This document shows positions 1 to 23,906 of a stretch of DNA of 64,000 bases, piece by piece (within the stretch, counting starts at the first letter, position 1; every line of letters begins with the position of its first letter). The notes beneath the pieces are model-generated. The model was not told where the DNA came from and made no database searches. It saw nothing but the letters and a program-made list of their open reading frames with translations. The position numbers and the translations under genes are program-made. The stretch is from Ramazzottius varieornatus (taxonomy: Eukaryota > Animalia > Tardigrada): contig BDGG01000007.1 in the NCBI GenBank assembly GCA_001949185.1, positions 1,880,730 to 1,944,729 of the forward strand. The letters run 5' to 3'.

Positions 1-118
1 AATATTTCCAGATCCGTAAATCATACACGATGAAAATCCATCCAGAAGTTACTGAAAAAAACAGCCGTCCGAATTATGTCCCAAAAACGGGTACGGCCGA
101 ATTATGTCGTTTACCTCG
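1..118. mobile_element. Right end of a TA-targeting MITE, same family as 34331-34670
   Basis: Ends GAATTATGTCGTTTACCTCG followed by TA, identical to the right end at 34651-34672. Left end lies outside the window. Confidence 0.7.
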
Positions 119-228
119 TACACTTGATTAACGATTAGTCCTTGATTGAAGGTAATAGATATTTTCTGTCCCCGCCACGTGACATTTGAGAACATGTCAC
201 GTGATTGGGCAGAACTATCAAGGGAATA

Positions 229-344
229 CTGTGTACTCTCCCGAAATTCACGTACGTCAGTCCATTCAGAGTGTATTTTCGTCACGGTAAGACCCCAATG
301 ATTTGAGAGTCAGTGACGTACGTGAATTTCGGGAGAGCATACAG
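229..344. mobile_element. MITE, 116 bp, pogo-related TIR
   Basis: TIR CTGTGTACTCTCCCGAAATTCACGTACGTCA with its reverse complement (2 mismatches). TA on both sides (227-228, 345-346). Confidence 0.8.
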
Positions 345-595
345 TACAGTACTGATGGTTACTGTCTAAGACCGTATCCTAATGTCCGAAAGGAGAGTGT
401 TCTTCTGTGTTTGCCAGCTGCACAAAGCTGTCGCCCCGTTTTGAGAGTCTCTTGGAGGCACCATGGATCACACTCGTTTAAACGATTCTAATGCTAGGTT
501 TGTCATAGCAAGTCGAAAGATTGGCGATTGTGGGCACGTACCACACCTTCTCGTCCACCACGCTATAGCTAGCTGTCAAGCGATAAACGGAAGTA

Positions 596-2256
596 CAGTC
601 AGCGCCATGGGTCATCGTCTGGCCAGCTTATTTTCACCATTCTTGGTGTCAGTTCCGATCCTCCGGACGGATATGCAAAATTGTTTTTTCCCCTGACTCG
701 CAAAACATCATTCTTCATGATGCATATACATTAGAACCAAAGATTCAAGTAAAACAGTAGCTTTGCTTTGGAGACCCAAAAACTGTCAGAATCGGTAATA
801 CCCATCTTCACCGTCATCGGAAATCCAAAAATCAATAACATAGTGACCACAAGTCTGCCCAACGTGAAATTTTTTCTGCATGTATTAGGATGTACGGAAC
901 GTGTTTTAACGCGTTTGGAACAGTCGATTTCTTTCTCTCAAACTTTAGCAAAAGATCGTTAGAAATGTCTCCCCAGAGATCTGAACACCCTCTTGAAATT
1001 CGAAAACTTGTGATTTACCACCATCGGAATCACGTGGGAGCCAGTGAAATAGCTCCTCGAGCATGTCTTCCAAGAAGTACAGTTCGAAGTATGATCGAAA
1101 AGTTCGAGAAGACTGGATCAGCGGAGGTGAAGCGGCGGTCGGGACCGATTCGGAAGACCACGGCTATTATTGATCGGACCATTGTGCATAAGGCGCAGAA
1201 ATTTCTGCAAGTAAGATTCAAGCAGAGATCAAGGCCCATCATTCCGTCGACATTTCAAAGACGACAAAAAGGCGCCGGATTCATGAACGAGGTATGTTTG
1301 GAAGAGTAGCTCGAAAGAAACCCTTCGTGAGCTATGCCAGCAGAATGAAGCGTTTGAAATTCGTCATGCGGTACGGGAAAAAGCCACAAACGTTTTGGGA
1401 TAACGTGCTGTGGTCGGACGAGACCAAAATCAACTTGTTCGGGTCGGACGGAATAGTGAGAGTGTGGAGAAAGCCGGGTGAGGAATGTGCGCCAAGTTGC
1501 ACGGTACCAACGGTAAAGCATGGCGGCGGTCGGCTGATATTTTGGGGATGTTTCAGCGCAAAAGGTGTGGGAAATTCGGCTGTAATCAATGGAAATATGA
1601 ATGGGCCCATGTATCGAGACATTATGGACAAGAACGTGCTACAGTCGGCGAAAAAACTGAATTTGAAGAAGGGATGGCATTACCCGCACGACAACGATCC
1701 CAAACATACTTCCTTCGTTGCCCGAGATTGGATCGTTGAAACGAAGCTTAAAGTGTTGGAGTGGGCTCCCTATTCACCGGACCTCAACCCTATCGAGCAT
1801 TTGTGGTCTGAAGTCAAGGGACAGCTGAAAGAAAGACATCCTTCGAACCTGGAAGAGCTGGAAGGAACCGTCAAGAAAATCTGGTATGGGATGGATCCGG
1901 CAATCTGCGCAAAGTTGGTCCGATCCATTCCAAACCGACTTCAGAAGGTGAAAGGAAACCGGGGCTTTCCAACGAAGTATTGAGATACCGGCGCGTAACG
2001 AGAAAGTTTTGTGAAAATAATTTTTATCGGGAGGTAATAGAAGATTTCCTAGGTGGCTAATTTTCAGAGCTATTTGGAAAAATAATATTTTTCTCTTTCC
2101 CAGTTTAGCTTTCCTGCTTTGTCTTAACATTCCTAGATGGGAAATAGTTTGAACTAACTGTACGTAAAGTTTCAAGCGATTTGAAACTCCCGTCGTTGAG
2201 CTTTACCAGAAATAGCGGAAACAAGCGGGCCTGACGATGACCCATGGCACTGAGTG
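596..2256 (+). mobile_element. Tc1-like DNA transposon (DD34E), about 1.66 kb
   Basis: Imperfect TIRs CAGTCAGCGCCATGGGTCATCGTC... and ...GACGATGACCCATGGCACTGAGTG. TA duplication at 594-595 and 2257-2258. Internal transposase present. Confidence 0.93.
965..1983 (+). pseudogene. Tc1 transposase, frameshifted between the HTH and DDE regions
   Basis: N-terminal HTH (MSPQRSEHPLEIRKLVI...KRRSGPIRKT) is in one frame. WSDETK...HDNDPKH-x-SPDLNPIE (34 residues between the second D and E) is in another. Frameshift lies around 1190-1294. Confidence 0.9.
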
Positions 2257-2287
2257 TAGCTGGCCTAACATGCGTAGCACACACACT

Positions 2288-2372
2288 AGGCTTGACTTTN
2301 NNNNNNNNNNNNNNNNNNNNNNNNNNNNNNNNNNNNNNNNNNNNNNNNNACGGATAAGATAAAGTCAAGCCT
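2288..2372. repeat. Inverted repeat flanking the 50-N assembly gap, probably a MITE
   Basis: AGGCTTGACTTT before the gap (2300-2349) and AAAGTCAAGCCT after it. Confidence 0.5.
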
Positions 2373-2373
2373 G

Positions 2374-2412
2374 TATAAAACGTTTTACCCCAAAACCTGA
2401 AAGACATTCAGT
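2374..2412 (+). promoter_or_regulatory. Putative core promoter of the ALF-like gene
   Basis: TATAAAA at 2374-2380, Inr-like CATTCAGT at 2405-2412, GATAA motifs just upstream, ATG at 2467. Confidence 0.45.
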
Positions 2413-2466
2413 GTCCACTCGCCTTTCCAGATCGGATAGTTTCGACATTTGTTCTGTCTGTGCAGC

Positions 2467-2916
2467 ATGGCCCCTAAGCTTCTCGCTGCTCTTCTGGCCG
2501 TATGTCTGTTCGGAAGCTCGTTCGCCAGGTACAACGAGGCCGCTGTCCATAACGCAGTGGCTGTACAAGAGGATGGTAGAGTTGGGGGAGACTACAGTCC
2601 AGAGATGGCAAATCCATCAAACATGGCAAGCCGAAGCTTTGCGGTGACGATCAGCACTGCCGGACTGATCCTTGGACTGGGACAAGTTTCTGGCCTCATC
2701 GGCAACACCGCCTACGGCACCGTCTGCGGACAGCCCTGCAGTTTTCGACGAGCCACCCAAATCTGCAAGTGGGAGTGGACCTACAAGACCCACCTGCGAT
2801 GCCCCACAGCCGAAACCAACGCAAACTGCAGGAGCTCCAGACAACGAGCAGACAACGACGCTTTCCAAGCCGTCGTTGACCAGCTCAAGGCCCAAGGCAA
2901 ATGCCAATCCTATTAA
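2467..2916 (+). CDS. Secreted anti-lipopolysaccharide factor (ALF)-like protein, 149 aa, intronless
   Basis: Signal peptide MAPKLLAALLAVCLFGSSFA, acidic pro-segment, hydrophobic helix, C-x20-C-P loop CSFRRATQICKWEWTYKTHLRCP, then RSSRQRADNDAFQAVVDQLKAQG. Collinear with horseshoe crab/shrimp ALF as recalled. Confidence 0.78.
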   Translation: MAPKLLAALLAVCLFGSSFARYNEAAVHNAVAVQEDGRVGGDYSPEMANPSNMASRSFAVTISTAGLILGLGQVSGLIGNTAYGTVCGQPCSFRRATQICKWEWTYKTHLRCPTAETNANCRSSRQRADNDAFQAVVDQLKAQGKCQSY

Positions 2917-3054
2917 CAATCTTTCCTTTTACAAAGTCAAAGTCTTCCTTTCAACCTGCTTTTAGCTCAAGTGATTTTTAAGTGATTTCTAAAATGTGTC
3001 TAATTTTACCGTTGCATTCACAGAGTTGGAATGGCTCATAATAATTTAAAGTAT

Positions 3055-3258
3055 ACTAACGATGAGAAATTATGGGACAGTAAAAAGGATGGCACAGGCC
3101 TTTTCGATACGGCGGTACGGAAGCACGCACGCGACCGATTCACAGTAACACACTTTTCGACACTTTTCGACACTTTTCTACGGCCGGATTTAGCATGTTG
3201 CCGTCTTCTGCGCCTGTCCCATAATTTTTACTGTACTATAATTTCCTATTGTACGTGT
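3055..3258. mobile_element. Degenerate MITE (CACG-type family)
   Basis: Inverted AAATTATGGGACAG / CTGTCCCATAATTT. Similar ends at ~29455-29486 and 40394-40598. Confidence 0.5.
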
Positions 3259-6200
3259 GGGATGAGTGTCTTACCGACAAATGGCCGAGAGTTCCTTTTG
3301 CCGTGACGGACAGGCGAAGTGACAGAAAGTTGGCGCTAGGAGCCGTCACTCGCAACACCAAATCCGTTTGATACGTCTGTACCGCATACGGCTTGAAGGT
3401 AAAGGTAAAGTCCAGACTGTCATGGCTGATGAGAAGTCCACTAGAGGGCGACACTTGCAGGTACCGTCCGACCGTATCGAGGACGTACCACTTGTACCTC
3501 AAAGGGAACGCCGAACCACTAGATAGCTCAAACGGTAGCTGCGACGTCAAATTCAGAAAGGTGTCGGGAAAGATCAAGGTGTCGGCCATAGTGACGCGTA
3601 TCTCCGAGTCGTCGAAAGCGCGAAACTGGACGGGGAATGTGGCATCACTGTCTTCGTTATCGTTCAGTACGAGGGACAGCTCCTTCGATATGAGGGCCTT
3701 CGGCCGGCATGACGAAAGGTAGGCTACGATGAGGCGATGGTCACCGGGCTCCATGACGCCGAAACGAGGAGAAATGAACAGCGACCTGCAAGATGCCATC
3801 GATGTAAATCATGCTTTTGACCTCAGCTCAGACCAGAGTACAATAATTGCACAGAAAACCCGGCTATACTTTTCTGCATCCTTTTCCAAACGGTACATGA
3901 CAGTGTTGGCCGTTGGGTTTGTCACCACAAACGTGGCGAACGATCGACCATTTGCTCCAAACTGGCGGAAGGTGATAGGAGGCTTGATGTCGATGTAGTG
4001 CAGGGAGGGACGCAGATCCCTCCGTGCATTGAAGGTGGCACAGTGACCTACCAACGGCCAATTGTTCGATAACTGTGAGGTTCATTTCCTCCGGGTGTCC
4101 GCTTACCTGATAGGGACAGGTTGAGACAAAATGGGGGGATGACTTGGAACTCTTCCACAAGCTGGAAGCTGGACAGGAATTCGTACATCAGGTGGCAGGT
4201 CGCTTGCCATTGGAAGAATAGATTGCTGCTGTCCTAGAAAGCATTAGGCGTTGATTAACGGCACTTGAGAACGCTGGCGTGAAATATTTCATACTGGTGA
4301 GAACGTGACGGTAAACCCTACTGCTCCTCGCGGTGGCAAAAGCGTGCTGGCGGGCTCGACACGGAAGATAGCATTCTGCTGGGTTGTCCAGTTGACGATC
4401 AATGGCTCGTTTGCTTGGCTGGTCATTTTGACAGTCTGAAAGAAACAGTTACCGCAAAACGTATCAACGGCAAAGGTCTAGAAGTCATTTCATATATGAA
4501 AGCTCAATGTCGACATTTGCATGGTTGGTCTCGGTGATGCCACTTACTCTTGTCAGGCTGCATTCGGCAGAGACGTAACCGAAGAGAAGTTCATCTTTGT
4601 CAAGCGTCACTGGCCTTTCAATACACTACAGTCAAAGTTGGTTTTGGCCAAACTTGGCCGGTACTTCTGTTTTTTTACAACGCACTTGAGGCAAATGACT
4701 AACCTGGGTGACTGCGTCTTGCTGTGGAGAAAACCAAGCTTGATACGGTAACGTTTCGGCCTCGAATCGTTCCACCTGACCGTTTTCGTCTGTTTTCACA
4801 GAAGCTCCGGCAGCTTGTTCAGGACCTCGAACAACTCTCTCCAGGATGTGGTTGGTGTGAACGCGAAGAATTCCACACTCCACTTGGTCCTTCAGCATCT
4901 GTTGGTGTTAAAATTAGCACACTGACGGTGATTTGTCAATTGTGGTGCTATCAATAAACATCGTCGAAAAGCCAAATGATCTAGGGTGTCAGTCAATCCG
5001 AACCTGCCTTTTTCGTTTTAACCGCACTGGTTCTTGGCATCATGCAGCCAGAAAACGTTACACCAGCTGCTGATTTTCACCCAGGTCAATTTGGAAGTTC
5101 GCACACAAAAGCCAGATCAATGAAGAAAAAGGAGCTAGTTACCCGTGGTCCCATGCTAATCAGCTCTTTCATCTCCTGCTTGCTAAAGGTCTCCAAATGA
5201 CAGGGTTCAAGCAAAGGGGGCTGAACTAGACTGGAGTGACACGTTCCAATGACGTCGATGGATATAACGCCCTCGTTGTGAACTAAACATCGGAGCAGCC
5301 GCCGATACAACACCGGCCATAGCGGATGAAAGTGGACAGTGACCAACACCGATTGTCCTGCAGCAATGTTACCACCCAGTGGCTCCACTTGAAAGACATC
5401 CGTAGAGCCGGCCCAATCAAACTGGAAGAAGGTGGAACTCAGTCCCTGGTTGTCCAACTTGAAATGAAGCGAAGAAGATTGGTGGAGAAAGACTAGGCCA
5501 AAGTTCAGCAAGTCCACCGATGCGCTGACCGATGATGACTCGACCTGGCCGACACAGCGAATGGTCATTGAGGCATCTTGTATTTCCGAGGAGAAGATAA
5601 AGTTCTCGACCAGTCCGGTGTCACCGTTGGTGGAGTCATCTGGACGAAAAGCAATCTACAAACAGCACGAAGACCATATTATAGCGCCAAATTTTGCGCG
5701 ACTTTTCAAAGCTGAATGATATTACCTTTGTTTTTCCACAATTTTTACACAACAGTATTGTAGCTGGAGTTTGTCATATTTCTATGGTCTGTCAAGTTTT
5801 CACATAAAAAAACAGTCTGTAGTATTCTTGTTACGTCATCTTGTTCACTGGGCACAAACAGTACACGCACGAAGGGAAAGTTTGGAACAGTACACGCGCC
5901 TGGCCTAAATGTGGGTATGGAGCGAAAGCGGCACTGGCCAGTTGAGGTTGACCAATCAATTAAATCAATCGAAGCACAGTCGCTTTCGCTCCGTTCCCCA
6001 CATTTTTGTCCATCCCCACATTTAGGCCAGGCGCGTGTACAAAGTTTGGAACAGGCGGAAAAGACGGCAACTTGAGAATTCAACCGTAGAAAGTTGCCAG
6101 AAAGTGCATTGTTGCGAATTGCACACGTACGTACGAACTTCCGTTCCGCTGGTCCGCAATCGCTTGTTCCAAACTTTTTACTGTTCCGAACTTTCCCTTC

Positions 6201-7487: not shown

Positions 7488-8076
7488 GATAAGCCACGGC
7501 TCACCACAAGATCACTTCTGTCAACACAGAAATGAGGGGCAGATAAACGGAGTGCTAACAGCTACGATCGCACTGACAAGGCAGCAGTTATTCTCATTCA
7601 AAGTTAAGATGATGACATGGGTCTAATCACGTATGACGTGTGTGCCACCGTTACCATGTCACCCTAGCCATTTATAATTCGTTCGGTGATGAAAGTCTTT
7701 TAGCCGGCTTTAACGTCTCGACACGACCCATGGCGCGCCGTATTGGCACCATACTCTCAACGCAACCATAACAGCGAGCGCCGACAAAAAACTTCGCTTT
7801 GCCTCGACTGCTTAACATACTGTTCAAAAGCAAGAACACCCAGAAGAAACCGTATCACTGATCGCCGAAATGGACGGGTTGCCCCTAATCGGACCAGGTG
7901 TGGCTACTCAGTAGACGGCTTAGCTTAAACAACACGGCAAATCTTTTCTTCTTTCTTTTCCTTAAATCAACTGGATTATACTGATTACAGCCATGCACAA
8001 AACGCGAGCCAATTTGCAAAAGCATAAAGAGGCCCGGTAGTACCAGACCCCAAAACAATAAAACTATTCAAATCAG

Positions 8077-8250
8077 CTAAACATCTCGGTTATTGACATC
8101 GACAATAGAATAGATCTCCTCCAAACCTCTATGACTAGAAAAGGTTCCGAAAACAGAGGCAGCGTTACCACGTTGAATATCTATACTAAGTTTTTTCTTC
8201 AAAAACGAGAGAGATCTTGTTTCGCCGGTAGCTTCTGCTTTTCTTTTGCC
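8077..8250 (-). mobile_element. 3' fragment of a CRE/RLE-type non-LTR retrotransposon
   Basis: ATGETRSLSFLKKKLSIDIQRGNAASVFGT matches the conserved C-terminal FL.QRLS.AIQRGNAAS..GT motif. The element is 5'-truncated. Confidence 0.75.
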
Positions 8251-8917
8251 AAATGAAACGGGGGTCCACATGACCCGGAAGAAAAGTTGAACTAGACATG
8301 AATGTTTAAATTATCCGTTTTATACAGGCAAATATCTGTACACGCGGCTGGCCTGATTATTGGCCTGGACAAAATTTCTGGCCAGACGGGCTGGCGGCAG
8401 TTTAACGCAGAGATTGTTATGTCGTAGCAGAAACTAGCCCTGTGATGTCAACAAGGAACATTTCGCAGTGCAGTATGCGGAATACAGTGTCATTCCAGAT
8501 TTCGTTTCTTGTTTCGTACTTCTTTTCCCATCTTGAGGAAGGTTAGCCTGGAATATGCCGGAAGGCCTTAAGAGCAAGAGACAGCGAAAGTATTCGGAGG
8601 GTAGCCTGAAGGAGGCAAATCGTGCGGTTGCCTTCATAAGTTGGTGGATTACCTAATTTAAAGCCTTTCCGGCGAGAAAGTTCAAGTTTTTAACGTCGAT
8701 TTACCATCAGAGCTGCATTTGGCAAGCAAAATAACCAATCATATAGAAAGAAATCAGATCTACGATGATTAAGAAGATCTCTGCGAACGTTTCGTTGTTC
8801 GTGTAGGTAAAGCGGTAATGTGTGGTGAAACTAGTTCTGTTTCAGCCGCAAGCAAATACAGCTGGCAGAGCCGGTGATTTGGAAATCAGTGGCCAGAAGT
8901 TGTGTCCAGGCGAATAA

Positions 8918-9452
8918 TTAGGGCAGCCGTGTGTACACTTTAGCGCCACGAAATGCCAAGTTACGCGACTGGCGACGACCATCGTTAGCGTGTCCGAAAC
9001 AGGAAACGGGATGCATGTAGCAGGGTAGCAAGGTCCTGCTGTGTGGATGAGGGGAAATGACTTCTTGGGTGGCAGTTGCTGGCATAGTAGGTGTTTCGGC
9101 CTGATCCACAACGTCACTGTCGGTCGGCTCATCTGTCGTAGTGTTAGCCGGTGTTTTTTTCAGAGCCCACTTAACCCATGGCGGCATACCCATTCGCTTC
9201 AATACTCGCCCCTGACACAAATAAATCGCTCATTTGTAATGATGTATCCTGGTGGTGGTTACACTCGAATTTATGTACAGTAGTGCAAGTGTACAGTACC
9301 TGTTGGATGGAGTTGTCCCAATGGCGGAAAACTTGCTCCGGATGATGGGCTTCAACGGCATTTTCGGAACAACGTACTTCATGGAAGGCAAAGCCTGCCA
9401 GCAAAATGGAACTGCTAAGGAGGATTAATGTGGAATGTGGGCAAACAGCCAT
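8918..9452 (-). CDS. Allatostatin-C-family neuropeptide precursor, 148 aa; exons 9452-9300 and 9211-8918
   Basis: Signal peptide, phase-0 GT-AG intron joining IQQ to GRVLKR, C-x6-C-F core CYMHPVSCF (compare AstC CYFNPISCF), and basic sites KR, KK and GRR. Confidence 0.75.
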
Positions 9453-10179: not shown

Positions 10180-11831
10180 GTGAGTCACATTAGACTGTCC
10201 CGTACAGCTCATTCGGCATTGGCGGACAATGAAACTCGAACTAATCAATCTGAGGCAACCATTGAAGATGGGTTTCCATACAGCAGGCGCTATAGACATG
10301 AATGTCTTCGTCGCTGCTGCTGGTCTCTGCTAGGGTACCTGCTCAAAAAATCGTCTGAGCTCAATGCCGTCCATGAATATTATTTTGACCAGGCATGTGA
10401 CTAACTGATGTATATCGTCTGCTCACATTTCCGGTGGTGCAGAATGCCGATTAGTTATTGGGCCATATCCACAATCTACAGAAGATTCGACGATGCACGG
10501 AAAAAAAGAAGGAGAGTTCGAGAGTGTGACATCCAACGAATCGCTCTACAGGTATCCGAAGAAAGGGGTACAAAGACTTTAAACCCATGAGGGGCTGGCT
10601 TTACAGGTACCAGAAACGACACAGCATAGTGCAGCGGTCTCCAACACGCGTAGGGAGGAAATTCAGCATGACCGACGAAGACATTGTAAGCTTATGTTTT
10701 GAGACCAAATAGTGAATATACCGTGACGTCAAGAATAAATAACAGCAGGCTGTTTACCGTCCTCATTTCTTTCTATCTATGGCGTGAAGTCTTGTGTCTG
10801 CGAATTGCCTATTGTAATCTTAGTAAAACGAGGCTCAGTTTCTGGATATGGTCGAAGAAATCGTAACCTTGAACAATAAATACCCCGCCCTGCAAAATGA
10901 TCAACTTCGACGAAATCTCCGTGAAGCTCCAGAATTCTCCCAAGATTATTTCGCCGAAGGGAGTAAAATATGTGACCGTGATCGATCCGAATGCACCGAA
11001 AGAAAATTTCACAGTGGCCCTGGCCATTGCCGCGGATATAAATTTCCGGCCGTGGTGTTTTTCAAGACTGGCAAGCTATTCTGGAAAAGCTTGATATTCC
11101 CGTAAAAGGTGGTTTTCAGTACAAGTACGGCTTTTTCTTTGTTTTCCTTCAAACAGCGTTTCCAGTCGAAAACCAATTCGACTGTAATATTAGGTTATCG
11201 TGTAATTGCAGCTTCGGGTTGGTGGCAGTCCAGCTTAGATATCCAGTGGATTGAGTCCACGTTTGACGAGAAAGAAAAAGGTAGTTACCTTTTTCGAGAC
11301 CACGCACCCGCGCACCTAAGTTACGAGAGTCAAGCTTTGCTGGAGAAGAAAGGAATGGAGCAAATTTTTATTCCTAAAGGGCTGACGGGCAGGTACCAGC
11401 CTCTTGATTTTGGACTTAACTATCCGTTTAAGTGTTACCTAAAGAAATCCTACCACGAGTGGAGGGACAAGTGCACGGAAATCACCAAGAAAGGGTACTT
11501 GAAGAAGCCATCACGCCAAGAGTTTCTCTACTTCGTGTCCGAAGCATGGTCTAAAATCAAAACGTCCACTGTTGAAAACTCTTTTGTCGCCGCAAGTATC
11601 TTGCCTTAGTCACTCTACATGCTAGCTGACGAGAATGTTGAGGATCTGGACTGCACCTTTGAATGTAGTTTCACTTTTGTAGAAGACAACTAACCTGCTG
11701 CGCTGAATATTTCCAGCGGTAGCTGAGTGTATGGCGGATTGTTGATTCGACAGAGTGTGAAAAACTGATGCCCGGCGGGTGAAGTTTACGTGTACGATCA
11801 CGTGAGTCGCCAAGTCCATGAAGCATTACAG
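10180..11831 (+). mobile_element. Decayed pogo-like transposon (CENP-B-type HTH plus DD35D); left end not located
   Basis: DFKPMRGWLYRYQKRHSIVQRSPT at ~10575-10650, NFDE, KENFTVALAIAAD, and RDHAPAH...QPLD with 35 residues between the Asps. Several frameshifts. Right TIR ...GAAGCATTACAG ends at 11831. Confidence 0.88.
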
Positions 11832-11850
11832 TGCACTTCCTTTTGCTGTA

Positions 11851-17506: not shown

Positions 17507-18616
17507 TCAAAGCCACCAGAAACGCAGTTTGTCGAAAATGACCTTTCCTTGCGCAGCATTACCCAGTACAATGAGGACAGGATCGATGACTGTGGTCAAG
17601 CTCCGGATGGCATCAACAACCAAGTAGACTTCCACCACACCTCTGTCTGTGATCATTTGCCAAGTGAAGTATATGTCGTTGGGCATCAGACACAAAATGA
17701 CACTGATCGTTATCAAGGTCAGCGTGACGAAGCCAGTGCGGCTGCCGTTGAGTGCTCTTCCGCAGACCCGAAGTCCCTTTTCGCTTGCTGCAAACGCGCT
17801 GCCCGATACCGGTTGCCCTTCTCCCGCTGCCACCGCGTTCGATCGCGTGATAGCGCTGGTTCCGCTGGCTTGTTGACTGCGGGCCGCGGTGTTGACCGAA
17901 AGCGGCATGATCTGCTGTCTACGCTTAGTGAAAAATGGTTTGTAGCAAAAGAAGGGGTACGACAAGACGATACTGAGAAGCGGCAGATCGAAGAGAACTA
18001 CCTCCAGCACTGTACTCCACCAACCGACGTTTTCAGGCTCGATAGTGCAGTCAGGCGTTAGATTGTCAGAGAGATGAGGCCGAATTAAAGACACCAGGAT
18101 CGCAGTCGGAATGGTGCAGGCATTGATAATAACCCAATTAGACACGCAAAGGGTGATGGCGATCTTCGTCGTATGCTGTGAGCGGTACGAAAAGGAAAAG
18201 GTCACCGCCCACATACGATTGACGGGCCAATATAACGAGGTCGGGAAAGGCATAGCCAAAATAATTGTAATACTGGCAAGCCTTGTAACTTATGGAGCAG
18301 TTGAGTGTGTACTTTTCTAAAACATTGAGCGATCCATGGAAGATAGCGGAGAAAAAGTCGACCAGCAGTAGATTGACTATGTGAGTGGTTAAAGGGTTGA
18401 CAAGTGTGCGTCGAGAAGCAAAAGTGGCCAAAACAGCCAGGTTGAATATTCCGCCGACAACTGTGGCAAAGAGGGCCACAAAAGCAGACAATTACCAATT
18501 AGGTTCTCGGGTGTTGATGGTACCATTCAATGTTTCGGAGAACTTTGAATGGATGGAAACGCCGGAGAAAAGGACGAACGGTCGATCTGGAACCCTTCAG
18601 GTGCGGCCATACTCAT
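17507..18616 (-). pseudogene. Orphan class A GPCR, copy A
   Basis: Paralogue of 18676-19878. TAA in W*LSA and a frameshifting deletion of the HFLIA region before VNRMWAV. Confidence 0.85.
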
Positions 18617-18675
18617 AATCAATAGAATAGTTTAATTTAACTCGTTTAGTCTAGCGCGACTGCATCCCTGCACGG

Positions 18676-19878
18676 TCATCCAGGTGGCTCGTTTTTCCGG
18701 TTGCCAGCTGGGAATACCGACGGATAAGCCGTATCGCAACGACGATTGAAGGCGGATCGGCAAAAGGGCAGTCTAGAGCTGACCATCTTCCGTAGTTCAG
18801 TATTTCCCAGTACAATCAGGACAGGGTCAAAGACTGTGGTCAAGCGTTGCATGGCATCAACGACCAGATACACTTCCATCAGGTCGCTGTCTGTCATCAT
18901 CTGCCATGTGTAGTATACTTCGTTGGGTATTAGGCAGACGACAACACTCAGCGTCATCAAGGTCAGCGTCAAAAAAGCACTTGGGCTGCCGTTGAGTGTC
19001 CTTCCGCATACTCGCAGCCTCTTCTCGGCAACTGCCCTGCCCTCGTTGCCGGATACCGGCCCACTCCCACTCACGTGCACCCCGCCCCATGCCGTTGAGC
19101 CGTTGGTGGCTAATCGACTGCGAGCACCAGTATTAACGGAATGCGGCCTTATCTGTTGTCGGCGTTTGCTGAAGAAGGATTTGTAGCAAACGAAAGGGTA
19201 CAATAAGATGATTGCCAGAAGGGGGACATCATACAGAACTACCTCAAGTATCAAACTCCAAGAGCCAGCCTTAGCCGGCTCGATGGTGCAGTCGAGAGTA
19301 AGGTTGTCATCGCTTGAAGGTCGAACGACAGAAACCAGGATGGCAGTTGGTATCGTGCAAAGGTTAACGACTACCCAAGTGGTAGTACAAAATGTGACCG
19401 CCAGCTTTGTAGTATGCTGTGTGCGGTATGAAAAGGGAAAGGTGACGGCCCAGACTCGGTTTACGGCTATGAGAAAATGGGCGAAGATGACCAGGCTGGG
19501 AAATGTGAAGCCAAGATAGTTGTAGAAATGACAAGCTTCCTGGCCGAAGGTCCAGTTGAGAAAGTACTTTTCCAGAACATTTAACGGGCCGTGGACGACA
19601 GCAAGAACGACATCGACAAGCAGCAGGTTGATGATGTAAACAGCAAAAGGATTGAGTAGTGTGCGCTGGTAGGCGTGAACGGTCAGAAGAGCAGTATTGA
19701 GTATTCCACCGGCTACTGTAGCCAACAGAGCAATTGAAGCGGACAGTGACCAGGTAGGTCTCAATACATCAAGTGTAGCAATGGCCGATTCTGACAGATT
19801 CGGGCTTGAGAAGGCAATACAGAGAGTGGATAAACTTTCATTCCAGAAACGATCATTGGAGGAATTGTTATAAGACAT
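18676..19878 (-). CDS. Orphan rhodopsin-like (class A) GPCR, copy B, intronless, ~400 aa
   Basis: Seven hydrophobic segments, N-glycosylation sites at the N-terminus, GGILN, INLLLVD, WTFGQEAC, AVNRVWAV (DRY position), CLIP, FDPVLIV. Confidence 0.9.
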   Translation of the reverse strand: MSYNNSSNDRFWNESLSTLCIAFSSPNLSESAIATLDVLRPTWSLSASIALLATVAGGILNTALLTVHAYQRTLLNPFAVYIINLLLVDVVLAVVHGPLNVLEKYFLNWTFGQEACHFYNYLGFTFPSLVIFAHFLIAVNRVWAVTFPFSYRTQHTTKLAVTFCTTTWVVVNLCTIPTAILVSVVRPSSDDNLTLDCTIEPAKAGSWSLILEVVLYDVPLLAIILLYPFVCYKSFFSKRRQQIRPHSVNTGARSRLATNGSTAWGGVHVSGSGPVSGNEGRAVAEKRLRVCGRTLNGSPSAFLTLTLMTLSVVVCLIPNEVYYTWQMMTDSDLMEVYLVVDAMQRLTTVFDPVLIVLGNTELRKMVSSRLPFCRSAFNRRCDTAYPSVFPAGNRKNEPPG

Positions 19879-20899
19879 GGTACTTTTTGTACTGACTTTG
19901 TCAGCTATGTCCAACTGCGTGAGAGCCCCGCTTGAGCTGAGTGCGGAGGTGCATAGTTAGCAGAGTAGTGCGACTTTGCGCGAGCAGCTCGACAGTCGAT
20001 ATGGTTCGCGGTAGGATAAACGTCCACTCCGATTTATGGATATGTGAGATTTATCGATGGATTCGACAAAACTTTATCGAGATCTCAAGGTATCCTTAGC
20101 TAATTGGGATAGATGACAGCACCTGGATTAGCCTCTATCAATTTTCATGCTGAGCTCCTCGTTGTTTAGATCACGACTTCCCTTCTCTGCGCGAAGTCGG
20201 TACAGGGCCGGGGGACGTCTGCTCAAACACGTCAGGTCTCCGCAATTCTTCGAATGGTGCTAACGTTTCCGGTTCCAGGCCCGCTATACTTCTCCAGTTT
20301 TACAAACATGCTTCTAGCCATTTGCTATTCTTTCTGCTTTTTTGTACTGTCTGACTTGTTATCGAAATCTGATGAATCTTCAAAACAAAGAAACTTTTAC
20401 TCGCCTTTCTCTAAGCTTTCGCTTCGAGGGTTTGTAACTAGGCTCTTGACAGTTGAAGTGTTGAAAAGCATCTCCGAAAAATCGATAACTAGGAGGGCGG
20501 ACCGATGCAGAAGGACGGACTGAACCATCATGGAAACGCAAGCTGCGACGAGAGAAGCTTTAGAAACGCGGTGTTGCTCACAAGGAGATTAACGCAATTT
20601 ACCGCCTCTGAGCCATAAATTAGGATTACCGGTGGATATAGGAGAGTTTCCTTCATAGTCTGAACCAATAACTTAGACCCATTATCGTTCCGACAATAAA
20701 CTACAGGACGCGGAAGCGACGAAAACATGGCACAATCAGAGCAATCAGTCATCAAGTCGGTTATAAAGCGGCTAAATTGTCGCCACTCCGGCGTCCTGTA
20801 ATTTATTCCCGGAACAACAATGGGTCCAGGTTACTGGCTCCGACGATGAAGGAAGCTCTCCTCTATCCACCACAGTGGTCCTAGTTTGTGGCTGGGAGG

Positions 20900-21385
20900 C
20901 GGCTTATTACGTTAATCCCTTGTCGGTACCATCATCCGAGGGTCGACGACAGTGGCTAAACGTTGAAGAATGTCAGCTATATTGACGACGAATAAAGTGT
21001 TTCTCAGCACGCAGTCAGCTACGCTCAAGGTCGTCAAAGTCAGGGCCACAAATCCCGTCCGATTATTTACATGTGAGGATTTCCCACAGATCCGCGGTCA
21101 CGTTCTTTGTGCACCTCCCACATCGGTCGCTGGGTCCATATCATGTGGAGGTACCTTATGTACCCATCCCCCGCGACGCCCTGCGCACGTATTGCCATGG
21201 ACGATCGATGTTCGATCCATCTTTTGTTTACGAACATAAAAAAGCGACTTGTTGCAGCCCAAGGGATACGCAACAATAGCCGGTAAAATCGGAATCAGAC
21301 CCACAAAACCTTCCGAGACGATACTCCAGAGTCTAGTAATGGTCAATCCCACTGAGCGATCCTCATTCGTCTTCACAAGTGTCAC
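20900..21385 (-). pseudogene. GPCR fragment, copy C (TM5-TM7 remnant)
   Basis: IPILPAIVAYPLGCNKSLF and ICGKSSHVNNRTGFVALTLTT match the paralogues. It is 5'-truncated and frameshifted. Confidence 0.75.
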
Positions 21386-22793
21386 TCCATCCGGTGGTGT
21401 ATTTCAAAAATTCGAGGGGTCGGAAATTCTTTCGCGTCGCATGGTACGGTTTCAGTAAGAGGAAAATTTTGAGGGCTCTATAACTGGCCACACCTTCTGG
21501 AGTATGTCAACAGATTGGCTCAGTGCCAACCAATCGTAGACAGCAGGTACGTATGAGTCCTCAAACGCCAGCCAGCTGTATTGAAAGGTAAAGCAACGAT
21601 ATTCAGAAAGTGCATTTGACACCCGACAGAGTTTATGTTCCGCAGCTCGTTTTACTGACGAATACAGTGATCGAATACAGTGTCAGAAACGTAGACTCAG
21701 ACTGCCTGACGAACGTTTCGAAAGATCGACCGCGACCTATAGTTTTCCCCTTATTTATTCAATTTTCGAGCAGGGAAGGCTCGGTGCGGTGCGATGGATT
21801 GTTTTCACCATCCTTTACCGATTTGGCGAAAGTTTCTAATTCTAAACACGAAGATCATTCGACGTTAACGATACTGCCGACCATGCCCACACAGACGGAA
21901 ACGTGCGACTTGATTATTTGATCACCCCTGATAAAGTACGACGTAATGACAGTAATGTACGTGTGACGTGAGTTCAGAGCTCGACTTGCCATGCTGTGTG
22001 GTGAATGGTGAATGTTTAGCAGGCCTTAAACCGAAACCGAAAACGTTTGTATCGGGTGAGAAAGTATGACATGTCTTCTTGCCCTCTGCCGAAGTCAAAT
22101 TTTTTCTGACGCCATACCTCAAACGTTTTGGCCAGCTTATACACCCACACTAGCTTATACGGCACTCCCGAGATATTTTGGAAGACATTTCGCTCCATGG
22201 TTGCGAACGGCTGAAGGAAGGGGTCAAAATTAATAGACTGATACGGTGCTTTTCAAACCCAATTTGGGGAAATTTTTCCTATCTCGCTAAATAAGGTCCA
22301 AGTTATTGAGCGAGTGATAATCTATTAGCACCAGGACCCTACTATAAGAAGGTTGAATGACAAGTTCCAGTTCCGATTTCTGCAGTTTTGCGCAAGTGTT
22401 TTGTTCGGTGCGCACTCTGAAGCAGCCTTGCAACAGTAGCGGGTCCAGTCCGTGAACCGACTACGCCTGTTGAGCGGGAAGGTTTTCCATAAACAATTCC
22501 TGTTCCAGAGCGGTCTAGAGTACCGTTATAGTTTTGCTTGGTGAAAGAGATTTGGGTTTCCGCAGCCCAATTTTGATACGAACATTTTTGCTTTGAAAGT
22601 GCACTTTTTTGACATCAGATTGTTCGAATCTGTGAGTTCTGAGCCGGATAAGCCGTAATAACATCAGGCATTTAGCCAAATAATGCGTCAGGCATTTGGC
22701 CAAATAATAGGTTATAGGGATGCATGGTGCTGGACGAAGATGGAACAAGTTTTGACTTTGAGCAGTACCAAAGTGTTGGTCTCAGTAGGTCAA

Positions 22794-23906
22794 TCAGCGG
22801 CAGTGTATTCGGTTGGCTACTATCTGGCGTAGTTCGCTGTTGCCCAGAACAATGAGAATAGGATCAAACACAGTCGTCAGTCTCTGCAGCGTTTCGGCGA
22901 TGGTGAAAACACCCGGGGGATCAGTCTCGACTACCATCATCATCGTCCAATAGGCTTCGTTAGGCAACAAGCAAATGAGGACATTCAGTGTCATCAAAGT
23001 CAGAGTCACCAATCCGGTTCGGCTTCCAGTGATACTTCTCCCGCAGATACGTCCCACCCCTCCACCCTTTCCCTTCCCACTTCCACCGGCTCGCTGGCTT
23101 TCGCTCTGTTGCGCTCCTTCCGAACCTACGATCCTGACCATGGTTCGTCGACGGGTATCGTTTGCTTCAGAGGCAGCTTGCGGTGCTACACGTTGCTTGC
23201 GATCACTAAAGAAGGATTTGTAACACACTAAAGGATAGGCCAAGATAACTGATAGGATCGGTACATCGAAGATAAGAATTTGGGAAAGCGAACTCCAGAC
23301 ACCGATGACGGTCACGTCCAAAGTGCATTGTGGCGTGCCCTCCGTAGTAGAGTTGGTGATGCCAGCAGTAGCAATGACAGTTGGAATGTAGAGGATATTG
23401 AGAAGGATCCACACCGAGACGCAGAGCAGGATGGCGACCTTGGTCGAGTGGTGTATACGGTAGGAAAACGGGAAGACTACTGCCCAAACGCGGTTGACGG
23501 CAATGAGGAAGTGACCGAGAATGATGTTACCTTCAAAGACCCACGCCAGGTACCAGCGCAATACACAAGCGTTGTGACCCAAGAGCCACTGAGACGCCAA
23601 TTGTTCCAGTAGATTGAATGGCGCGTAGACAAGAGCAATAATACAGTCGATGATAAGCAAGTTTATGAGGTAGATGCCGAAGGAAAAACGAAGGGTAGGT
23701 CGAGAAGTGAAGATGGCCAGTACACTCAAGTTGAAAAGACCCCCCGTGATGATGGCAAACACAGTGACGCAGGCTGAAGTTGACCAAGTGGTGGCCGATG
23801 TATCTTTCGAAGAACTTGAAGTCGTCAAGGACGAAATACTCACATTTTTGGTACTATTCGGAAAAGCACTTCGCGAAACATTTGAACCAAAAATTCTCGA
23901 ATCCAT
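22794..23906 (-). CDS. Orphan class A GPCR, copy D, intronless, 370 aa
   Basis: GGLFN, INLLIID, WLLGHNAC, AVNRVWAV, CLLP, FDPILIV. The frame is open throughout. Confidence 0.9.
   Translation of the reverse strand: MDSRIFGSNVSRSAFPNSTKNVSISSLTTSSSSKDTSATTWSTSACVTVFAIITGGLFNLSVLAIFTSRPTLRFSFGIYLINLLIIDCIIALVYAPFNLLEQLASQWLLGHNACVLRWYLAWVFEGNIILGHFLIAVNRVWAVVFPFSYRIHHSTKVAILLCVSVWILLNILYIPTVIATAGITNSTTEGTPQCTLDVTVIGVWSSLSQILIFDVPILSVILAYPLVCYKSFFSDRKQRVAPQAASEANDTRRRTMVRIVGSEGAQQSESQRAGGSGKGKGGGVGRICGRSITGSRTGLVTLTLMTLNVLICLLPNEAYWTMMMVVETDPPGVFTIAETLQRLTTVFDPILIVLGNSELRQIVANRIHCR

Follow-up and report, generated by a model that had tools for sequence, protein, structure and literature searches.

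The window, i.e. the whole stretch of DNA that was analysed, comprises 64,000 nucleotides of the tardigrade Ramazzottius varieornatus (NCBI GenBank assembly GCA_001949185.1, contig BDGG01000007.1, positions 1,880,730 to 1,944,729 of the forward strand). The host assembly has 55.8 Mb in 200 contigs. Near the start of the window a short gene for an ALF-like protein is located between a transposon and a convergent exon of a CFAP65-like gene. The features are collected in Table 1.

Table 1. Features of the window (amino acid positions refer to the ALF-like protein).
Feature	Position	Strand	Basis or remark
Inverted segmental duplication of ~9.5 kb, part within the window	1-4140		genome self-match
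Tc1/mariner-type element, directly upstream of the ALF-like gene	594-2258		copies at 72-97% identity on many contigs
ORF of the Tc1/mariner-type element	1294-1983	+	matches DDE_3, E 1.7e-13
Gap of 50 N	2300-2349
TATA box TATAAAA	2374-2380	+	sequence; 32 bp upstream of transcript start 2406
mRNA, unspliced, polyadenylated	2406-3094	+	cDNA-type contigs, four studies
5' UTR	2406-2466	+	contig 5' end
CDS of ALF-like protein, 149 aa	2467-2916 (stop codon included)	+	ORF reading
Predicted signal peptide	2467-2526 (aa 1-20)	+	K4, hydrophobic core, small-residue c-region; cleavage after SSFA
Acidic spacer, candidate pro-segment	2527-2634 (aa 21-56)	+	net charge -2, pI 4.9, ends with R56
Hydrophobic N-terminal region of ALF-like domain	2635-2724 (aa 57-86)	+	mean KD hydropathy 1.12
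Cationic amphipathic loop C91-x20-C112	2737-2802	+	net charge +4; counterpart of the ALF LPS-binding domain
Predicted C-terminal helix	2839-2892 (aa 125-142)	+	AlphaFold pLDDT 86-89; inside the PF11630 match
3' UTR	2917-3094	+	poly(A) junction
Poly(A) signal variant AGTAAA	3079-3084	+	10-15 nt before the CA cleavage site 3093-3094
CFAP65-like exon ORF, convergent with the ALF-like gene	3236-3799	-	CFAP65-type Ig-like domains, E 4e-7
Dispersed repeat, ~270 bp	7980-8250		91-95% identity, several contigs
Repeat, ~600 bp	8335-8937		>30 genome copies, 84-92% identity
Dispersed repeat, ~1.3 kb	10473-11841		74-89% identity, several contigs
Cluster of three rhodopsin-type GPCR ORFs (7tm_1 / Srx-like)	17507-23906	-	many R. 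varieornatus paralogues

The open reading frame at 2467-2916 is a real, expressed gene and not a chance ORF. Contigs from four runs, which belong to four separate studies, were colinear with 2406-3094 and the genome ran on past both ends. The contigs started at 2406, 2408 or 2420 and ended at 3066, 3093, 3094 or 3148. The runs carried only the label "RNA? (a guess)". In one contig (run X1) position 2406 was preceded by the letters GCAGTGGTATCAACGCAGAGTACGGG, which we take to be the SMART template-switching oligo; this identifies the 5' end of a cDNA. A second contig (run X5) continued after 3094 with a 24-nt poly(A) run. On the strength of these two marks the runs were counted as cDNA. The cDNA contigs contained zero joints; therefore, the gene is intronless. 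The ATG at 2467 is the first in the mRNA, with A at -3 and G at +4. An identical 149-aa sequence is already held by NCBI/UniRef as a predicted protein without a Pfam domain on record.

The gene is part of a duplicated block. C7:1875356-1884869 matched C7:1202047-1192400 with 98-98.7% identity in inverted orientation, 690 kb apart. Besides the ALF-like gene, the duplication comprises the transposon and a part of the CFAP65-like gene; the 3' part of the CFAP65-like exon lies inside the duplicated block. The second gene copy (C7:1193617-1194063, minus strand) codes for an identical protein, and its CDS differs at three sites, all of them synonymous. In both copies of the duplication a gap of 50 N immediately precedes the ALF-like gene. 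The inverted duplication may be an assembly artefact. In one cDNA contig (run X12) we observed a T at 2511, i.e. the state of the other copy, together with the window bases at the other two copy-specific sites. The T at 2511 points to transcription of the other copy, too, or of an allele; the contig may stem from a third haplotype or from gene conversion, or it may be a mosaic made by the assembler. A third copy at C7:519513-519846 (minus strand) is degraded. Its signal/spacer and C-terminal parts are in different frames, it contains one TAA, and the entire Cys-loop region is missing (~40 aa deleted). Downstream in the window, the first ~47 bp of the repeat at 8335-8937 also match in inverted orientation at the ends of the copies, and this points to a MITE-like element bounded by terminal inverted repeats.

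Relatives and layout of the protein

Relatives were searched exhaustively with HMMER against 1.84 billion representatives and, in addition, by word-indexed searches. Very few were recovered, i.e. the window protein itself, P0002, P0003, P0004, P0006 and P0007. P0002 (149 aa, 50-53% identical to the window protein) and P0007 (142 aa, 43% identical) were derived from ENA contigs of short length. The Logan gene call P0003 was 77% identical over the first half and then shifted frame; by its sequence it resembles a close, Ramazzottius-like orthologue that was called with a frameshift. The two relatives from Hypsibius exemplaris, BV898_06250 (OQV19709.1; P0004) and BV898_06245 (P0006), are on one scaffold and are named "hypothetical proteins". 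By locus tag these genes are neighbours; in R. varieornatus, 690 kb separate the two inverted copies. P0004 matched the window protein with a library-wide E-value of 1.5e-9 (1.84 billion representatives); in BLASTP the E-value was 3e-14 with 39% identity over 61 aa and all six cysteines aligned. P0004 and P0006 share with the window protein the architecture, the six cysteines, the 22-aa loop and the acidic spacer, yet overall identity is just 27-29%, compared to 39% over the core. P0006 (169 aa) contains an internal tandem duplication which comprises the spacer end and the N-terminal helix segment, so that EEVRATGIVEAVI...QVIGTRWRD occurs twice. A scan of JGI metagenome contigs for relatives yielded none. 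P0005 (334 aa, E 6.6e-6) was rejected; this repeat protein of bacterial type has Pfam hits to unrelated families and matched the spacer only.

The family alignment is shallow with five sequences. Invariant in all five were C87, G88, C91, Q98, I99, C100, W102, T105, Y106, K107, T108, C112, N120, C121, A132, L140, G144, K145 and C146. The loop has 22 aa and a charge of +3 to +5 in each of the five homologues, and the charge of the domain is between +3 and +8. The spacer varies in sequence and length (32-56 aa); its charge is -2 in the window protein and -5 to -7 in the four other homologues.

From the letters alone, the original prediction had proposed a signal peptide, an acidic spacer of ~35 aa ending in R, a hydrophobic helix, a cationic 22-aa C-x20-C loop followed by P, and six cysteines in the mature protein. 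The sequence elements it quoted were all found at the coordinates given there, the loop exactly at 2737-2802. The first 20 residues are signal-peptide-like by sequence features. At the junction to the spacer, SSFA/RY, the tetrad FARY is also kept in P0002 and P0007. The spacer measured 36 aa with a pI of 4.9 up to R56. Within the spacer we looked for a dibasic or furin-type site and found none; one basic residue close to its end is kept throughout, as R56 in the window protein and as R or K in the other homologues. That the acidic spacer is cleaved off as a propeptide is a hypothesis.

The region that follows (aa 57-86) is Gly-rich and devoid of charged residues. A short turn, C87-G-Q-P-C91, leads into the loop, which has a net charge of +4 and is followed by P113, C121, a polar helix-prone stretch and C146. 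The stretch RSSRQRADNDAFQAVVDQLKAQG is present in the window protein. In the strand 101-111 the residues K/E/T/K/H/R form one face and W/W/Y/T/L the opposite one; in strand beta-3 polar and aromatic residues alternate. The six cysteines of the mature part are at 87, 91, 100, 112, 121 and 146 and, as the alignment showed, all six are invariant. A disulfide C91-C112 is the canonical pairing and, by analogy, is predicted here. The pairing of C87 with C146 and of C100 with C121 is a guess from strand geometry.

The proposed hydrophobic helix was confirmed as to its hydrophobicity, but a helix was not, because AlphaFold modelled this segment at a pLDDT below 50. Could it be a transmembrane helix at aa 60-78 instead of the N-terminal helix of an ALF, i.e. 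is the protein anchored in the membrane? The best post-signal 19-residue Kyte-Doolittle window is located exactly there, and its value of 1.62 is borderline. Yet the corresponding segment of P0004 and P0006 is charged and amphipathic, that of P0007 is not hydrophobic (mean KD -0.16), and the P0004 segment aligns with the ALF N-terminal helix. Further, a transmembrane helix at this position would put the six-Cys domain in the cytosol. On account of the properties of this segment in P0004, P0006 and P0007 and of the cytosolic six-Cys domain this reading was rejected; we consider it highly improbable.

Comparison with the ALF/scygonadin family

Few host-defence proteins of invertebrates are as well studied as the ALFs, which also serve as a template for anti-endotoxin peptides. 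The corresponding Pfam family is PF11630, Anti-LPS-SCYG (DUF3254), with a curated gathering score of 25 bits. The window protein matched this profile with 19.5 bits (E 1.2e-3; aa 84-143 on profile positions 26-87 of 100), i.e. under the cut-off; PF11630 was the sole Pfam family it matched. All five homologues matched PF11630, which was the only family, out of 24,736, that was matched consistently. P0004 scored 27.1 bits (E 5e-6), above the cut-off, and its match covered profile positions 7-80 including the N-terminal helix. In the public annotation P0004 carries a precomputed automatic PF11630 tag. Because P0004 is above the cut-off and its homology to the window protein is unambiguous, membership of the window protein in the ALF/scygonadin family follows transitively.

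Sequence searches against the PDB pointed in the same direction. A profile of three homologues retrieved one match among 177,635 chains, the shrimp ALFPm3 (2JOB), with an E-value of 1.1. In this alignment C91 and C112 were placed on the two cysteines of 2JOB and G88 on its Gly. With a profile of five homologues 2JOB was one of two matches (chain residues 15-89, E 0.17). These matches are consistent with homology; by themselves they are non-significant. Two other sets of hits were dismissed. A single-protein phmmer search of the PDB returned PIT54 SRCR and fungal antifungal proteins (E 0.1-2.6), i.e. compositional or Cys-spacing noise, and a match of the A4 profile to V-ATPase subunit G fell in the spacer and hydrophobic part.

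A full-length AlphaFold model from a two-sequence alignment had a pLDDT of 38.9 and was discarded. The model used comprised the 98-aa domain (aa 52-149) and was built with five sequences. For aa 78-149 the pLDDT was 82-89, and four antiparallel strands (79-86, 89-100, 103-111 and 116-122) and one C-terminal helix (125-142) were predicted. In the model the beta-hairpin 89-111 sets C91 opposite C112. Among 350,542 PDB chains the best Foldseek match was again 2JOB (probability 1.00, TM 0.54/0.52, E 0.056), with an rmsd of 2.0 Å over 65 columns. In VIA-align 2JOB had the longest aligned length (77 residues) and a Z of 6.3, and several dsRBDs reached Z 6.0-6.7. Because dsRBD folds scored level with 2JOB, structure alone is not decisive; the modelled fold is compatible with an ALF, but unspecific. 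In the ESM Atlas an ALF cluster was the best structural neighbour of the window protein model (TM 0.62). For P0004, the two nearest clusters by ESM language-model features were both PF11630 (score 0.86, 179 shared features); on this scale genuine family members usually share 170 or more.

The resemblance to dsRBDs consists of a similar alpha/beta geometry, and dsRBD clusters also appeared in the ESM Atlas structure lists. Yet the window protein had no match to the Pfam dsrm profile (PF00035) at E-values up to 10, and it has a signal peptide and six conserved cysteines. This indicates an extracellular, disulfide-bonded protein; thus, the dsRBD likeness is one of fold only, and identity as a dsRBD was rejected.

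Is the protein then possibly unrelated to ALFs, a tardigrade-specific Cys-rich secreted peptide in which a cationic disulfide loop arose by convergence within a common alpha/beta arrangement? The sub-threshold Pfam score of the window protein itself, the non-significant PDB sequence matches (2JOB at E 0.17-1.1), the dsRBDs level with ALF in VIA-align and the mere handful of relatives are in line with such a peptide. However, P0004, whose homology is beyond doubt, passes the PF11630 threshold, the five members unanimously choose this family, and the Cys register is that of 2JOB. Moreover, an ALF came first by three independent methods, i.e. sequence profile, Foldseek and ESM features/structure. 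We consider a non-homologous origin improbable. Homology of the window protein to the ALF/scygonadin family is, in our assessment, very likely.

The original prediction of a divergent ALF branch was thus upheld by the profiles (PF11630), Foldseek and the ESM features, and none of the refuting outcomes it had listed was obtained. It had named a profile search and a superposition on an ALF structure as checks. The former succeeded via P0004 and the match of five out of five homologues, but not directly, because the window protein remained below the cut-off. The latter brought up 2JOB at the top in Foldseek, but with dsRBDs as a tie in VIA-align.

How close is the similarity? Like ALFPm3 (2JOB), the Limulus/Tachypleus ALFs and those of crustaceans, the tardigrade protein is small and, as predicted here, secreted, with a hydrophobic N-terminal region ahead of a beta-sheet. 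Both have a cationic amphipathic C-x20-C hairpin which is followed by Pro, with the cysteines in register with 2JOB, and a C-terminal helical part with a SxR...A..F/V....K..G-like stretch. As in ALFs, a signal peptide and an N-terminal hydrophobic segment are present, with the spacer between them as an atypical element. By sequence, C91-x20-C112 appears to be the pair of cysteines which in ALFs closes a basic/hydrophobic loop of ~20 residues. There are also differences. Identity of the window protein to ALFs is 14-18%. Classical ALFs have just two mature cysteines, whereas the tardigrade proteins have six invariant ones. Unlike ALFs, the latter have an acidic spacer of 32-56 aa between signal peptide and domain. 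Two C-terminal helices exist in ALFs and a single one is predicted in the window protein. Its N-terminal hydrophobic segment is Gly-rich and poorly modelled, in contrast to classical ALFs; in the H. exemplaris proteins P0004 and P0006 the N-terminal helix is more amphipathic and charged than in the window protein. The intronless gene of R. varieornatus is to be counted as another difference from ALFs.

Proposed function and possible evolutionary meaning

Taken together, we regard it as probable that the locus holds a transcribed, intronless two-copy gene for a secreted, divergent member of the ALF/scygonadin family (PF11630) in R. varieornatus. That this protein is antimicrobial or binds LPS is suggested by analogy, and we lean towards such a function with considerable reservation. 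The mechanism may then be drawn along the lines of ALFs (PMC11767717; PMC7017220). After removal of the signal peptide the protein would be secreted, and, until its cleavage, the acidic spacer may cover the cationic domain within the same molecule. The disulfide-closed hairpin C91-C112 would be the active part, as in shrimp and Limulus ALFs, and would bind anionic microbial amphiphiles such as lipid A/LPS, possibly also lipoteichoic acid or beta-glucan. Binding would result in neutralisation, permeabilisation or opsonisation. The other four cysteines probably pair as well, and these two disulfides would stiffen the small fold.

A true homologue with the ALF fold might serve elsewhere, as a secreted structural, reproductive, egg-shell, cuticle-associated or signalling protein. 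An identity to ALFs of only 14-18% fits with this, and the extra disulfides and the spacer suggest a remodelled protein. PF11630 also includes scygonadin, a reproductive-tract protein. With scygonadin and SCY2 of mud crabs the tardigrade protein shares the family profile, secretion and a disulfide loop. Scygonadins are anionic proteins of the male reproductive tract; by comparison, the tardigrade domain is cationic (+5). What is best conserved, however, is the lipid A-binding part, i.e. the exact loop length, the cationic charge and the amphipathic strand, and this argues for a retained ligand chemistry. We consider a non-antimicrobial role unlikely.

The original prediction had tied its novelty to a host that is neither a crustacean nor a chelicerate and to a gene that is not yet annotated as an ALF. 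R. varieornatus is a eutardigrade, so the first point holds. The second holds for the window protein, which has no Pfam record, but does not extend to its H. exemplaris relative with the automatic PF11630 tag. In the searchable literature we found no paper that joins ALFs and tardigrades and none that names the H. exemplaris accessions. According to reviews, ALFs are confined to crustaceans and limulids (PMC9409781; PMC11767717). A comparative study reported no ALF homologues outside Malacostraca and designated the family "malacostracan-specific" (PMC5437397). A survey of tardigrade immunity noted that Tardigrada are without much of the canonical Toll/Imd machinery, and it ended with the question whether tardigrades have antimicrobial peptides (PMC7056985). 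The family as such is known; new are its occurrence in Tardigrada and the cysteine framework, and this novelty is tempered by the Pfam tag in H. exemplaris.

We tentatively suggest a wider reading, which is possible, though doubtful as a whole. The ALF-like proteins of eutardigrades, with their six Cys and spacer, might have descended vertically from an ALF of the panarthropod ancestor, with repeated losses of the family, e.g. in insects and branchiopods, and might operate as LPS-binding antimicrobials with an inhibitory anionic pro-segment. If so, they would be the first known immune effectors of Tardigrada that are anchored by homology. A tardigrade branch would place the origin of the family at least as far back as the tardigrade-arthropod ancestor, unless an old horizontal transfer took place. 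Structure-function work would obtain a version of an LPS-binding scaffold that is naturally stabilised by three predicted disulfides. Tardigrade immunology gains a concrete, expressed candidate effector.
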